Part shown: positions 41,584-55,865 of the stretch, one piece after another | How positions within the stretch are numbered: position 1 is the stretch's first letter | How the letters are laid out: each line of letters starts with the position of its first letter | Source: Chlorokybus atmophyticus | Lineage: Eukaryota; Plantae; Mesostigma and Chlorokybus algae | NCBI GenBank assembly: GCA_009103225.1 | Contig: RHPI01002990.1 | Coordinates: 834,341 to 898,340 of the forward strand | DNA length: 64,000 nt | Reading direction: 5' to 3' | Position numbers and translations under genes: made by a program | The notes under the pieces: model-generated | What the model was told of the DNA's origin: nothing | Database searches by the model: none | The model's input: the letters and a program-made list of their open reading frames with translations, nothing else

Positions 41584-42718
<1,135 letters not shown>

Positions 42719-43509
42719 NGGCTCCTATACTACTATACTGGCCAATGACGGCATCTCTGAAACTCACAGCAACTTCAGGGCCTTGGGTGTGCAGAACAAG
42801 ATGCATTGAGTTGCCATAATGATGGTACGCTGTGAGGTTGTTGACGGTGCTGCTTTAGTGTCAACAGCAGTGCGAATGAGCTTCAAGAGAGCCCAACACA
42901 CTACAACATGCATCACCATATGTGACTAGTTCGGTTTGGTGGTTGGTTCAACCAAGTACGACGCTGCTTGAGAAAACCCATACATGCAGGTGCTTCAAAC
43001 CGCCTCAAGAAAGTGAAGAGAACCACATGTATGAGAGTCCTTACCACCAAGGTTTGCTTTGACTATGGAGTTGCAGCTGCATGATGTCAATGGACTATGC
43101 ATGATGCGTTGAGCGTGCAAGAAGCGAACCTGCGAAAGGAGATTGAAGGCCCCAGGGTACTGAGTTTCTGAGTTTTTGTTGTTTTGTTTTTGCTCGTGTG
43201 CTTGTCAGGGAGACTAAGTCATGATGATGGCCCAGCAGCGTGGGCAGCATACCAATGTGTGGTCTACCCTGACCAGGCAGGAGGAGGCCTTGTGCTTTGC
43301 GGTCCTGCTGGGCCATCATGTTACTGAGGTCACCAGAGACAATGTCTCAGCAGAGAGCTGGGGAGAGAAGGGCCTCAGCTCTCAGCTCTCTGTCATTCAG
43401 TGTGTTGGCGACGGTGGTTGGCAGCGCCAGGGCTCAACAATAAAGAGCCTTGGTAAATCAGGGTCTTTTTTTCTTCAAGGCTCCAAGACGAGAACATGAG
43501 AGGTCAATA

Positions 43510-46944: not shown

Positions 46945-47460
46945 NNNNNNNNNNNNNNNNNNNNNNNNNNNNNNNNNNNNNNNNNNNNNNNNNNNNNNNN
47001 NNNNNNNNNNNNNNNNNNNNNNNNNNNNNNNNNNNNNNNNNNNNNNNNNNNNNNNNNNNNNNNNNNNNNNNNNNNNNNNNNNNNNNNNNNNNNNNNNNNN
47101 NNNNNNNNNNNNNNNNNNNNNNNNNNNNNNNNNNNNNNNNNNNNNNNNNNNNNNNNNNNNNNNNNNNNNNNNNNNNNNNNNNNNNNNNNNNNNNNNNNNN
47201 NNNNNNNNNNNNNNNNNNNNNNNNNNNNNNNNNNNNNNNNNNNNNNNNNNNNNNNNNNNNNNNNNNNNNNNNNNNNNNNNNNNNNNNNNNNNNNNNNNNN
47301 NNNNNNNNNNNNNNNNNNNNNNNNNNNNNNNNNNNNNNNNNNNNNNNNNNNNNNNNNNNNNNNNNNNNNNNNNNNNNNNNNNNNNNNNNNNNNNNNNNNN
47401 NNNNNNNNNNNNNNNNNNNNNNNNNNNNNNNNNNNNNNNNNNNNNNNNNNNNNNNNNNNN

Positions 47461-47498: not shown

Positions 47499-48306
47499 AT
47501 CCAATGCAAGCATAGCCCCATTTGTCCTTTTGTATCATCTCCATCATACAATCGCCAACGACAACGACAACAACAACAACAATTCCTACGATGATGATAA
47601 CAATCCGTGATGAGGGCTTCACAAGCTACACGTTTGGTGGGCATCAAGTCGGGCACAGTGGTGGTGGGGACCTCATATTGAAGCACGGGTTTGCTACCTC
47701 GATACTCTTCAGCGTATCGAGGGGGTTCAGTCTCCTTTTCTTGCTTTGGACTGACGAGCATAGCCCAAGTATTGATTGCAAACTATAATAGGTACCTACC
47801 ACTACAAGCTGCAGAAGATCCACAAAAGCTGTAGCATGTCCTCATTAGCAGCATACGTGCGCACACAGCACAAGCGGTCAGCATAGGTGCGTGGGCAACA
47901 GGCGTGGGATGCGTGTCGAGCAGGGGCTACCGGCTTGACATAGCAGGTACGGCACCTACTTAGTACCTTTTCATGAAACAGGCACGACTGCGTGTTAACT
48001 TCTTTCATCTAGCATGAATATGACACAACAAGGTTGTAAACAATGGCAGCAAAGTCGTATAAGAAACGGAAAGCCACATTCAGAATTAGCTGAGACATGC
48101 ATAAACCTGCTTATAGCAATGGCCTGTAATGATGGCTAGGACAGTTAAGGACACGCCAGGATGGATCTCCTCCAAGACAAGGACTGTACTGCTCTGCACT
48201 CCATGCCAGTATAACCAGGCTCGTTTGCAGCAGTCAGAATGCTGCTGATAAATCGATTGCACCAAACAAGTAGTGGTTTCAATACAAAGGTGTGGCGCAA
48301 CCAAGT

Positions 48307-48351
48307 TAGCGGTTGAGAGAACAGTGCCGAGCACTGTTCTCTCAACCGCTA
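48307..48351. other. Perfect 21-bp inverted repeat with a 3-nt loop in the TLK 3' flank
   Basis: TAGCGGTTGAGAGAACAGTGC-CGA-GCACTGTTCTCTCAACCGCTA. Confidence 0.95.
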
Positions 48352-48377
48352 CAGCTAATGCTTGCAACAAGGGGAGG

Positions 48378-51300
48378 TCAACAACTCCTTCGCGCCTTGG
48401 CAATGGCCAAATAAGGGTCCGTGGCAGCAGCCAACACGTCAGGGCGATCCTGCTGCTTGCTCGTCAAACACCGCCGGATGAATTCCTAAGACATCACGGT
48501 TGTTGTTACGCAAAGCCAACCCCACCAACCCATAGCATTATGCCGTCACCACTATCTACTGAGCACCTTGCAAACAATAACTGTGGCAACACCAACAGTG
48601 ATGGTTACAGTGTGTTAGTGCTTGACTGCTCAGCAAGGTCTCATTTACCTTTGCTTCATTTGACACAACTGGTTTGGGAGGAAACTCCACGCCGCGACTG
48701 CGAACGATGGTTTCTTCCCGCAAGATCTTTTCTTGGGATAGGTCGTGCCCAAATGGTCTTCGACCATACAGCATCTGATAGAGGATGACTCCAGCCGCCC
48801 ACACATCCACCTGCCAAGGCATCCAAGTTCACAATCTCACGCTGCCGAACACAGCTCTGCTTACATCCTGCATGACTGTGCATACCTTAGATGATATTCG
48901 CGGTGGCTTCCCACTCATCTCAAAGCACTCTGGCGGCAGATACCTGTCAATAATACTCTTTAGCTACACAAGTATACTATCCACACAGTCTTATGTGCCT
49001 CAACCTGCTGCATGCCGTCACTGCCGGGCATAATCAATCTTACCAGTAAGTTCCAGCTCCCTGCGATGTGAGCTCCATGCTATCAATGCCGATTTCTTCC
49101 ACAATCTTGCTTAACCCAAAGTCGGTGAGCTTTGCTCGTCCGTTAACATCGAACAAGATGTTGCCAGGCTTGAGATCGTAGTGTATCACTCGGCGAGACG
49201 GGTCGTTCAGATAGGCCAGTGCTGAAAACACCTGAGATTCCAGCCAGATGGACATCAGCTTCACGCCTGAGTCCAAACATGTGCTGTGTCATTGACAACA
49301 CGCAAGACCATGCTTGCCTGCATTACGATGGTGCGCGCTTCACGTTCTGACAGCATATGGTTGGCCTTCAGATGCGCATCCAAGTCATTACCTACATCAG
49401 CAAAGTGTCAGCCAGGGACCTCAGAAAGCTTTACAAAACCACTGATCAAGCACCGCCAACACACCTTCACAGTACTCCAGAACTGTGGCAAAGGTGTTGG
49501 TGTCAATCTCAAAGATGTCATGCAGGCGCACTATGCTTGGATGCTCCAAGTTGCGATGGATGTTGTACTCTCGCATAGCATGCCGCACGTAGCTCTGCTT
49601 CTTTGCTTCATTCCATTGCATATTCAGTTGATGAATCTTGCAGGCAACCTCTCGCAGGTCAACAAGATCGTAAGCCTGCGTTCAACAATGCAAGCAACAT
49701 CGCGTTGGTGAGGACTCAATGGCCAGGGTGTGCAACAAGGGACAACAACAGCAATAACCACCAGAGAGAGTGCACACCTTGTACACTTCACTGAATCCGC
49801 CCTTGCCAAGCAGATTCAACATCACATAACGCTTGTTCAGCACACAATAAGTGTTGAACCGTGAAGCATCCTCATCCCTGACTCGCTTCAACTCTCGTAT
49901 GTGCTTGCTCTTTGCCGCGTCAAGCCTTTCTCTTTCTTTGAGCAAGTAGTCTTCTTCCTGATATGACAGTCATACTTAGTATCGTGTACACCATATACCA
50001 AAGATACTGTGACGGCACAATAGTCACAACTTACCTTTTTCAAGTTCGCTAGTTTAATTTTGTAAATCTCCTCTGCTATCTGCTGATCTTGGCCGGTCAT
50101 TGCTCCGTTCTCGTCAACAGCTTCTCCATCTGCAAAGTTGGCTTGGTCAAAAGCCCTTAACAATAAGCGACAGCTGTTCACAAGTGTGGTTAAACGTGCT
50201 CACCTACAACAGTGGGAGGCTTCTTGAGCTGTTTGCGCAACCGTTCCACTGCTTCGCGCTGTTGCGTGAGGGCTACCTGCGCAAGGGCGTCAAGTGCTGA
50301 TACACGGTTTCTACAAAGCAGATGTGGTGTCAAGGAAGTTGGAGAAAATCGTACACATAGCGACTACTGTACCTGTTTTGCATTCAGGTCAACAAATGAT
50401 TGACCGTCTTCCCACACCTCTGACAGAACTGGCCCAGCTCTGGACATGGACACACTGCCGATGAGCCTTGTTGTCAACAAAGTGTAAGAAAGGGTGCACG
50501 GTTGCTCACCTTTGCACACCAATAGTACCAAGCATGACTTGGTCCTGCCTGAGCTTCACTCGGCAGGCCATGCGCTCCTTCTTTGCCGCCTCAACGACCA
50601 AGTCCGCCAGCATTCGGCAAACCTGTTCGCACCCACCATAAGACACACCACATGGGAGGATGTAATTGCCAAGCATGCCCAACAAAAACGCACACCTTCA
50701 ACTCTCGGCACTGCTCACGCTCTGAGGCTTTCTGCAGCTCCTGCAAGTTACAACAGCTGGTAAGCACCCTAATTGCAGACTCAACAAGGTTGCTGTGATT
50801 GATGGGCAGCATTATTGTTAATTTTGTCATACAGCTGCTGCCCTTGCGAGGTAATATAAAAGTAACTTCTTGCCACCAGATGGCATCTAAACACTTTTTA
50901 ACTAGAACCGTACCGCAACAAGCTTCTGGTTCTGCTGCTCAGCCTCCTGCAGGGCCTCTTGAGCCCGTGTGCTTTGTTGCTGGGTAGCCTCCATTTGCGA
51001 TCGCCATGATAGACGCTCTTGCTGAACAAGTACACAAGAGATTGATACGGTTTTCGTAATACAAGCAGTTCCGACACAAACGGCTTGCTCACAAACGGCG
51101 GGGGCTTACCTCAAAAGCCTGGCGCTGCTGCTCCAATGAGGCATGCGACTTTTCCAGTGAGACCTGTCGTTGGCAAGTTAACAAGTAGTAAGCAAAGTTG
51201 AGATAAGCTGCATTCATGCATGGCAAGTATTGTGAAGTTCAATGACCGGGGCATAAGCATACCGTAGTTTGGCAACCCTTGGCCGTGCTTGGTGCGCAAA

Positions 51301-52663
51301 TGCGCGTGGTGATAGATGCAACTCGCACATCTGTTTCCGTGGAGTGCCGTGATTCCTCATTCAACTGCATGCAGCATATAAACAGCCTTCAGAAATGGTT
51401 GAACACCTTACAATGTTGCACACTGCGCTTACCATGCAACCAATTACCTGTGCACTGAGCCTTGCTTTTCGACTTCTGGTCAGCCGAGCATCCCCGCTAT
51501 CGTCATGCTGGATGCCAACGCTTGGAGGCGTGCTCAAAACACCATCCCGTAGCAAACGCTTGTAGCGGCGCTTCAATGCTGCCGGCGTTCTTTCTGGCAA
51601 GCACGACGATGACACTACATCCCAGTTTTGTCCATTATTTCGCACGCCCTGCGCACATTATTACAACTACTTGATTGCCAGTCAATGTGCGGACACGCAA
51701 CTTGGCACATTCAGTGCTTCAATGCGAACCTCAAGCAATAGGCAATCCTCTTCCTTGCTGAATGTACGTTTGCTCATTGTCCTCTTTGTGCCTCGCTGGG
51801 CATTATGTGCCATATGAAAAGCCGCGCCGCTATCCTGCACGGTCTTGCTGTGATCAGGCCAGCGTACATGGGCAGTGCTCACCAATCCACACGCAACCAA
51901 CGTGCTCGGTGATAACACTGCAGTCTAGGACATCTGATGCGTGCCAGTTCGGGCAACATGCAACAAATGTTGCCCGAACGGTTTACTGTTTCTTATCATG
52001 ATGAACCACGACGTACGACCACAATCGAGGCTTTCAAATGAACCTGAAGTGACCACAGTGCTGCAGCTCGCTGCGACCAGCAGCTGACAGCAACCGCTTA
52101 TAATTCATGCTATAGTCTTGCAGTACCATTGGACAACTGGCATGCTTGCATCGCTAGACTGCAGCATCGCTGTGGTGACCAGCTCTCGCCATCGGCGTCC
52201 GTGCGCATTGCATGTATGCTTAAAGTAAGTACAACAAGCTCCAATTGTCCTCATTTTGCATGCGCTGTTCACACTATTGTTTGGTACCCCACCCCGCAAC
52301 GAAGCGGTGGTAGGGCTTGAGAAGGATGAAACACATAGCTTAGGCTATCAGCAACCCGTGCGCCCATGTGACCTTGACTGTTCCAATTACCAACCACTTC
52401 CACAGCTTCAATTCGCCACAATTATAATGCTGTACTAACACCATTAGGGTTTGAGAGCAAAGTGCAAACGACAAGCTTACATCGTCGGAGTCGGAGGTGG
52501 ACGGCAGCTCGTCGTCAGCCAAATCAGGGAGGACGAGGCCACTGGCGTCGGGAGCAGCAGCCGTCTGGGCCCCAGTCAGCCTGGCCTCCAGCAGGCGCAG
52601 GCGCTCGGAGGCGCCATTAGAGTTGGCGCTGTTGGACAGCTGGAGCATGAGCGCCTCCGCCAT
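48378..52663 (-). CDS. TSL: Tousled-like Ser/Thr kinase with an inserted Myb/SANT-like domain
   Basis: Plant TSL-type start ([26 protein letters not shown]), coiled coil with EVWEDGQSF, kinase [88 protein letters not shown], ending [17 protein letters not shown]. Confidence 0.95.
52444..52452 (-). promoter_or_regulatory. Telo-box-like AAACCCTAA in TLK intron 1
   Basis: TTAGGGTTT on the + strand, about 28 nt inside the first intron (donor at 52480). Function is inferred only. Confidence 0.35.
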
Positions 52664-53062
52664 CGGGAGGAACGCCAATACAACTGCTGCAGCACAGCAA
52701 CACAACCAACACGACCCCGAAAGAAACTTCAATCAGCTGAGAGCTCACATCATGCCACACCCACAAGTTCAACAACGACAACGACCACCTCGCCCACAAC
52801 CAGCACGCTGCCCTCCACCCGCCTACCACCCGCCGGATGCAGCACAGCGCTGCTGCTGTGCACACTTGTGTGCGCAAGCAAGCGGCAGGCGCCGAATTAC
52901 GTGAATACGAACGCAGCAACCTGAATTGGCCGACCCGGGAAAACCCGCGAGACCCCGCCAAAAAAGCGAGTTGCGAAGCATTTGGGTGGTTGCGCAACAT
53001 GACCTGAGGTCATTGACCCACACGTGTGCATGCAGAATGTGAAATGTATACCTACATCCAAC

Positions 53063-55169: not shown

Positions 55170-55865
55170 GAGAGAGAGAGCGAGCGAGAGAGCGCGAGAG
55201 AGCGAGAGCGAGCGAGGGAGCGAGAGCGAGAGCGAGAGCGAGAGCGAGAGCGAGAGCGAGAGCGAGAGCGAGAGCGAGAGCGAGAGCGAGAGCGAGAGCG
55301 AGAGNNNNNNNNNNNNNNNNNNNNNNNNNNNNNNNNNNNNNNNNNNNNNNNNNNNNNNNNNNNNNNNNNNNNNNNNNNNNNNNNNNNNNNNNNNNNNNNN
55401 NNNNNNNNNNNNNNNNNNNNNNNNNNNNNNNNNNNNNNNNNNNNNNNNNNNNNNNNNNNNNNNNNNNNNNNNNNNNNNNNNNNNNNNNNNNNNNNNNNNN
55501 NNNNNNNNNNNNNNNNNNNNNNNNNNNNNNNNNNNNNNNNNNNNNNNNNNNNNNNNNNNNNNNNNNNNNNNNNNNNNNNNNNNNNNNNNNNNNNNNNNNN
55601 NNNNNNNNNNNNNNNNNNNNNNNNNNNNNNNNNNNNNNNNNNNNNNNNNNNNNNNNNNNNNNNNNNNNNNNNNNNNNNNNNNNNNNNNNNNNNNNNNNNN
55701 NNNNNNNNNNNNNNNNNNNNNNNNNNNNNNNNNNNNNNNNNNNNNNNNNNNNNNNNNNNNNNNNNNNNNNNNNNNNNNNNNNNNNNNNNNNNNNNNNNNN
55801 NNNNNNNNNNNNNNNNNNNNNNNNNNNNNNNNNNNNNNNNNNNNNNNNNNNNNNNNNNNNNNNNN

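Follow-up and report, generated by a model that had tools for sequence, protein, structure and literature searches.

A Tousled-like kinase of Chlorokybus atmophyticus with a predicted Myb repeat between its N-terminal motif and its coiled coils

Does the Tousled-like kinase (TLK) of Chlorokybus atmophyticus, a streptophyte alga from the earliest-diverging streptophyte clade, carry a Myb domain of its own, and what would such a domain do there? TLKs are conserved, ASF1-directed regulators of replication-coupled chromatin assembly, and their route to chromatin is known only in part. Human TLK1 and TLK2 are recruited to damaged chromatin via a non-canonical PIP box in the N-terminal region that binds PCNA (PMC11879137), and Arabidopsis TOUSLED (TSL) has the SANT/Myb protein TKI1 as a binding partner and substrate (PMC4081062), a partnership that the first-pass annotation of the present locus had named correctly. 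The TLKs described so far combine a kinase domain with three coiled coils and an N-terminal region, and the coiled coils mediate dimerisation, as shown for TLK2 (PMC6023931). The locus lies in a stretch of 64,000 nucleotides (contig RHPI01002990.1, positions 834,341 to 898,340; hereafter the window), for which the first-pass annotation, made from the letters alone, had proposed a Tousled kinase with an in-frame, TRF-like Myb/SANT domain.

The TLK coding sequence extends over 48378-52663 on the minus strand, as do all its parts given below, from an ATG at 52663 to a TGA at 48380-48378, and is divided into 18 exons that encode 705 amino acids. A 705-residue protein from this gene is public (P0001; EukProt EP00898_Chlorokybus_atmophyticus_P002224, which is jgi/Chlat1/3001/Chrsp2S04716), and when threaded by script onto the window it gave an exact residue-for-residue fit in 18 GT-AG exons, with exons 1, 2 and 3 joined. 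Single exons were searched separately, while every analysis of joined sequence used P0001; when exon 3 was used as a HMMER query, P0001 came up with full identity at residues 97-163. There are no assembly gaps (N) within 48300-52800. Exons 1, 2 and 3 (52481-52663, 51730-51834 and 51448-51648) measure 183, 105 and 201 nt, all in phase 0 and made up of whole codons. The acceptors of exons 2 and 3 read gtgcag and gcgcag, and the donors of exons 1-3 read gtaagc, gttcgc and gtaatt. The phase, AG/GT borders and translations first proposed for exons 2 and 3 were thereby confirmed from the sequence, and the proposed joining of exons 1, 2 and 3 to the kinase in one gene agrees exactly with the public model.

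Is this gene a genuine TLK? Residues 300-705 of P0001 are 61-65% identical to land-plant TOUSLED proteins, the top named matches, over 99% of the region. Downstream of exon 3, the reading frame runs on via six GT-AG exons into the coiled-coil region and then through the kinase exons to the TGA. Exons 4-11 (50035-51364; residues 164-382) encode a linker and the coiled-coil region, with heptad-rich sequence in exons 5-11 that includes the TLK motif EVWEDGQ and is collinear with TSL and TLK homologues. The protein kinase domain occupies residues 427-696 in exons 12-18 (48408-49825; Pfam Pkinase, 187 bits) and contains the motifs HYDLKPGN and DFGLS. A plant-type N-terminus is also present in P0001, with SNS.N, LEAR, an acidic run and a basic stretch resembling a nuclear localisation signal (NLS). 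Judged by these matches, the Chlorokybus protein is a true TOUSLED/TLK orthologue.

Within the kinase domain, we noted that exon 14 of P0001 ends at 49327 (GT donor gtaatg) and that three kinase-domain residues are missing. Extending exon 14 by 9 nt leads to a GC donor (CAG/gcaagc), an intron at 49317-49232 and the acceptor tctcag, and gives TIVMQ/VFSALAY, which fits the TLK homologues (IMAQVFAGLAY, ILVQIFAGLAY) in length and sequence. The intron between exons 14 and 15 is thus probably, on its sequence, a GC-AG intron that was missed by the annotation.

Turning to the putative Myb domain, residues 84-129 of P0001 match the Pfam family Myb_DNA-binding (PF00249) at 30.9 bits, where the gathering cut-off is 24.4; the match spans positions 2-46 of the 46 in the profile, and residues 60-170 alone score 34.3 bits. 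Exon 3 by itself matches two Pfam Myb families (Myb_DNA-bind_6, E 1.3e-3; Myb_DNA-binding, E 4e-3) and covers positions 16-46 of the latter, the C-terminal two thirds of the repeat, and the missing positions 2-15, corresponding to helix 1, come from exon 2 in the correct phase. The Myb-coding bases are 51768-51730 (residues 84-96, helix 1) and 51648-51550 (residues 97-129, helices 2 and 3), with intron 2 (51649-51729, 81 nt) interrupting the domain between them, in agreement with the span 51550-51772 marked by the first-pass annotation; the remainder of exon 3, up to residue 163, encodes a basic and probably disordered linker. The residues spanning the junction, LLLE/GV, recur as an unbroken LLLEGV in P0007, a Myb protein unrelated to this one. 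A chance open reading frame (ORF) was ruled out, because the Myb profile match is completed across the intron in the correct phase.

The structural prediction points the same way. An AlphaFold2 model of residues 76-140, made with a 20-sequence Myb alignment, consists of three helices with a mean pLDDT of 82 (at least 90 for 42 of the 65 residues), and its best structural matches are all Myb/SANT domains. The aromatic triad is F86, W105 and Y125, spaced 19 and 20 residues apart, and the domain is basic, with an isoelectric point (pI) of 9.3 as a whole and 11.6 around helix 3, whose basic sequence reads LKRRYKRLL. The profile match and the model support the view that residues ~84-129 form a complete single Myb/SANT-fold repeat, predicted to lie after the TSL-type first exon and ahead of the coiled coils; on both counts, the single Myb repeat proposed at first stood up to closer inspection.

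Do exons 2 and 3 truly belong to the TLK? Exon 1 encodes residues 1-61, the TSL-type N-terminus ending in the acidic SDSDD, as seen from its translation and from a TSL N-terminal profile that we built from 107 land-plant TSL N-termini; from among 88 local fragments, this profile picks out the exon 1 ORF fragment with an E of 2e-4. Together, the acidic end of exon 1 and approximately the first 18 residues of exon 2 (which encodes residues 62-96) align with a land-plant TSL motif in which G.F.I..N.QKR.K comes after an acidic run. Exon 2 accordingly holds, in its 5' half, the conserved, basic and NLS-like TSL motif DSG..F....N.Q+..K+ and, in its 3' half, Myb helix 1. The TSL profile score is 16.4 bits for exon 1 alone and 27.9 bits for residues 1-130 of P0001, but 15.9 +/- 1.55 bits when exon 2 is shuffled (1 of 200 shuffles attains the real value) and 9.0 bits when exon 1 is joined directly to exon 4 onwards. 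Since exon 2 raises the score from 16.4 to 27.9 bits, Myb helix 1 sits in an ancestral TLK exon. Intron 1 (51835-52480), at 646 nt, is far longer than introns 2-8 (70-173 nt). Within it, at 51947-51979, two perfectly matched 13-bp arms (GTTCGGGCAACAT / ATGTTGCCCGAAC) form an inverted repeat around a 7-nt loop.

To what extent is the architecture shared by other TLKs? A search with residues 300-705 returned 3,827 proteins at E<=1e-60, and we inspected the best 120, which comprise land-plant TOUSLEDs, the TLK of Mesostigma viride (P0097) and a few others. By precomputed Pfam annotation, only P0001 carries PF00249 among these best 120, in a protein collection that covers the genus Chlorokybus by this one species. 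A lenient Pfam scan of eight other TLK N-termini found no trace of a Myb domain, nor did a local Myb hidden Markov model (HMM) run over 124 TLKs, and P0029-P0032, the four nearest relatives by N-terminus from a search with residues 1-425, were all without one. Plant TSL and animal TLK1/TLK2 thus have in common with the Chlorokybus protein the N-terminal motif, the NLS-like stretch, the EVWEDG coiled coils and the C-terminal kinase, but are described without a Myb, of which Chlorokybus TLK has one repeat; the earlier statement that known TLKs lack this domain is borne out among the homologues surveyed. In the 885-residue Mesostigma model, the first ~350 residues are Ala/Thr/Pro-rich, of low complexity and without the TSL-type N-terminal motif, and this N-terminus may be mis-predicted. 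We found no description of a TLK with a built-in Myb in the literature, in agreement with the first impression that the architecture was new, and the main text of the C. atmophyticus genome paper mentions neither MYB nor kinase (PMC7027972). The Myb-bearing TLK is therefore a real, so far single-species variant with a public but undescribed gene model, and we regard a TLK with a built-in Myb repeat as very probably the correct architecture.

Which type of Myb domain is it? The first-pass annotation had called it TRF-like and of the telobox type on the strength of its GV..G.W and RT...LK pattern. This pattern (GV+..G..W, RT...LK) is indeed present, but it is common to many Myb repeats. By sequence, the nearest solved domains are those of Trichomonas Myb21, c-Myb and Myb3; TBF1, a telomere protein of yeast, reaches 20.8 bits, about equal to a single c-Myb repeat, and TRF1 and TRF2 were not among the matches to solved domains at E<=10. 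By structure, TRF2, CDC5L, tvMyb2, c-Myb R1 and TRF1 all match within one Z unit. Helix 3 reads LKRRYKR, with the telobox Asp and Trp replaced, Pfam detects no TRFH domain on P0001, and the AlphaFold2 model lacks the fourth helix that marks the plant Myb-extension type. Whereas TRF1, TRF2 and TBF1 carry their Myb at the C-terminus, that of Chlorokybus TLK is N-terminal, without TRFH and without the telobox Asp/Trp. The TRF/telobox label thus finds no confirmation, since the domains of c-Myb, CDC5L and TRF fit to much the same degree. c-Myb, the Trichomonas Mybs and CDC5L have two or three tandem repeats, in contrast to the single repeat fused to a kinase here. The closest relatives of the Myb segment are fungal multi-repeat Myb proteins and metagenomic ORFs, at 33-45% identity, and these are so scattered that the source of the segment is untraceable.

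What, then, might a Myb repeat do in this kinase? Proteins with a single Myb repeat, TRF1 and TRF2 among them, bind duplex DNA with their repeats in pairs. We envisage that the Chlorokybus TLK gained one three-helix Myb repeat directly after the acidic/basic NLS-like motif and before the coiled coils. Since the coiled coils bring TLKs together as dimers or oligomers, the holo-kinase would display at least two of these single repeats, in a manner resembling TRF homodimers, and the paired repeats would then hold the kinase on DNA or chromatin, close to its ASF1-histone substrates. As an overall explanation, a TLK orthologue with a lineage-specific Myb repeat that tethers the kinase to DNA or chromatin probably accounts best for the data. 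Taken separately, the tethering role of the domain is possible, though we would stop short of calling it probable.

A bolder version of this idea starts from the PIP-like motif. The pattern phi-x-x-Y-F occurs in the Mesostigma TLK, in two other algal-type TLKs and in an animal-like TLK (P0029 at residue 141, P0031 at residue 170, P0097 at residue 247 and P0033 at residue 210), and is absent both from residues 1-312 of P0001 and from 118 land-plant-type TSLs, so that land-plant TSLs and Chlorokybus TLK are alike in this respect. Its absence from the Chlorokybus protein is suggestive of the Myb as an alternative tether. Likewise, TKI1 is in Arabidopsis a separate SANT/Myb protein associated with TOUSLED, whereas the Myb module of Chlorokybus TLK stands in cis. 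It is nevertheless rather doubtful that the Myb would be a direct, sequence- or structure-specific DNA anchor that replaces the PCNA-binding PIP-like motif, that the protein would be a Rosetta-stone fusion for the TSL-TKI1 partnership, and that the dimer would bind DNA in the manner of TRF.

The same partnership can be turned into a different explanation, in which the Myb domain is real but serves as a SANT-like binder of proteins or histone tails, a docking site or a pseudosubstrate, mirroring TSL-TKI1 in cis. Histone-binding SANT domains are typically acidic. The Chlorokybus domain is basic, and its third helix strongly so; the acidic surface of the histone-tail-binding SANT subtype is missing, which we take as an indication only. 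In the structural matches, moreover, identity is 14-16% to SANT domains against 24-33% to DNA-binding Mybs. We consider a SANT-like role rather unlikely, and it remains the best-surviving competitor to the tethered kinase.

Several points weigh against a Myb-tethered TLK as we propose it. The first and third Trp of the Myb repeat are replaced, albeit conservatively, by F and Y, and the argument for DNA binding comes from charge alone. Such a TLK is known from one genome only, and with the N-terminus of the Mesostigma model in doubt, absence of the Myb from this sister lineage is weak evidence. The remaining points concern the transcripts and lend themselves to an explanation of their own, namely that transcripts skip exons 2 and 3, or just exon 3, or include them only in minor forms, and that the main TLK protein is without an intact Myb. 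Exons 2 and 3 are both symmetric (phase 0-0), so that skipping keeps the reading frame; the donor of exon 2 (gttcgc) is unusual and weak, with T at +3, and further donors that would keep the frame follow 21 and 33 nt downstream of it; exon 14 is probably wrongly drawn in the public model, so that P0001 is not purely transcript-derived; and the protein collection held no short transcript-derived fragments matching residues 62-197 of P0001. Without exons 2 and 3, on the other hand, the TSL profile falls from 27.9 to 9.0 bits, and exon 2 encodes a conserved TSL motif. If it went unused, a Myb profile match without gaps would be unlikely to survive across an intron of 81 nt, and the introns flanking exon 3 (81 and 83 nt) are of a size usual for this gene, whose introns 2-8 measure 70-173 nt. 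C. atmophyticus models were built by MAKER from transcript, homology and ab initio evidence, and there is transcript support for 9,066 of the predicted coding sequences, out of ~9,300 gene models, or ~97% (PMC7027972), which likewise argues against skipping. We therefore hold skipped or minor exons for decidedly unlikely.

Least likely is a recent neutral accretion without a role in the TLK, for instance through exonisation of part of a Myb gene that had been duplicated or carried by a transposon, since the single genome and the scattered Myb relatives that would favour it are set against a complete, in-frame domain whose model is well folded, a divergence from every other Myb that argues against recent capture, and the lack of any repeat or paralogous copy of exons 1-4 or intron 1 elsewhere in the window (self matches only in tblastn and blastn).

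A natural TLK with a Myb in cis would offer a simple system in which to ask whether direct tethering to DNA or chromatin matters, and a Myb within a TLK would hint at a Myb-TLK coupling older than the land plants. One genome and one gene model give this a modest weight at present.

Lastly, outside the TLK gene, the window contains an uninterrupted (CT)n/(GA)n microsatellite of ~1.2 kb at 41600-42790 and, around 38-44 kb, a strong strand-compositional skew. At 46945-47460 and 55305-55865, further GA/CT dinucleotide repeats flank two assembly gaps (N runs).
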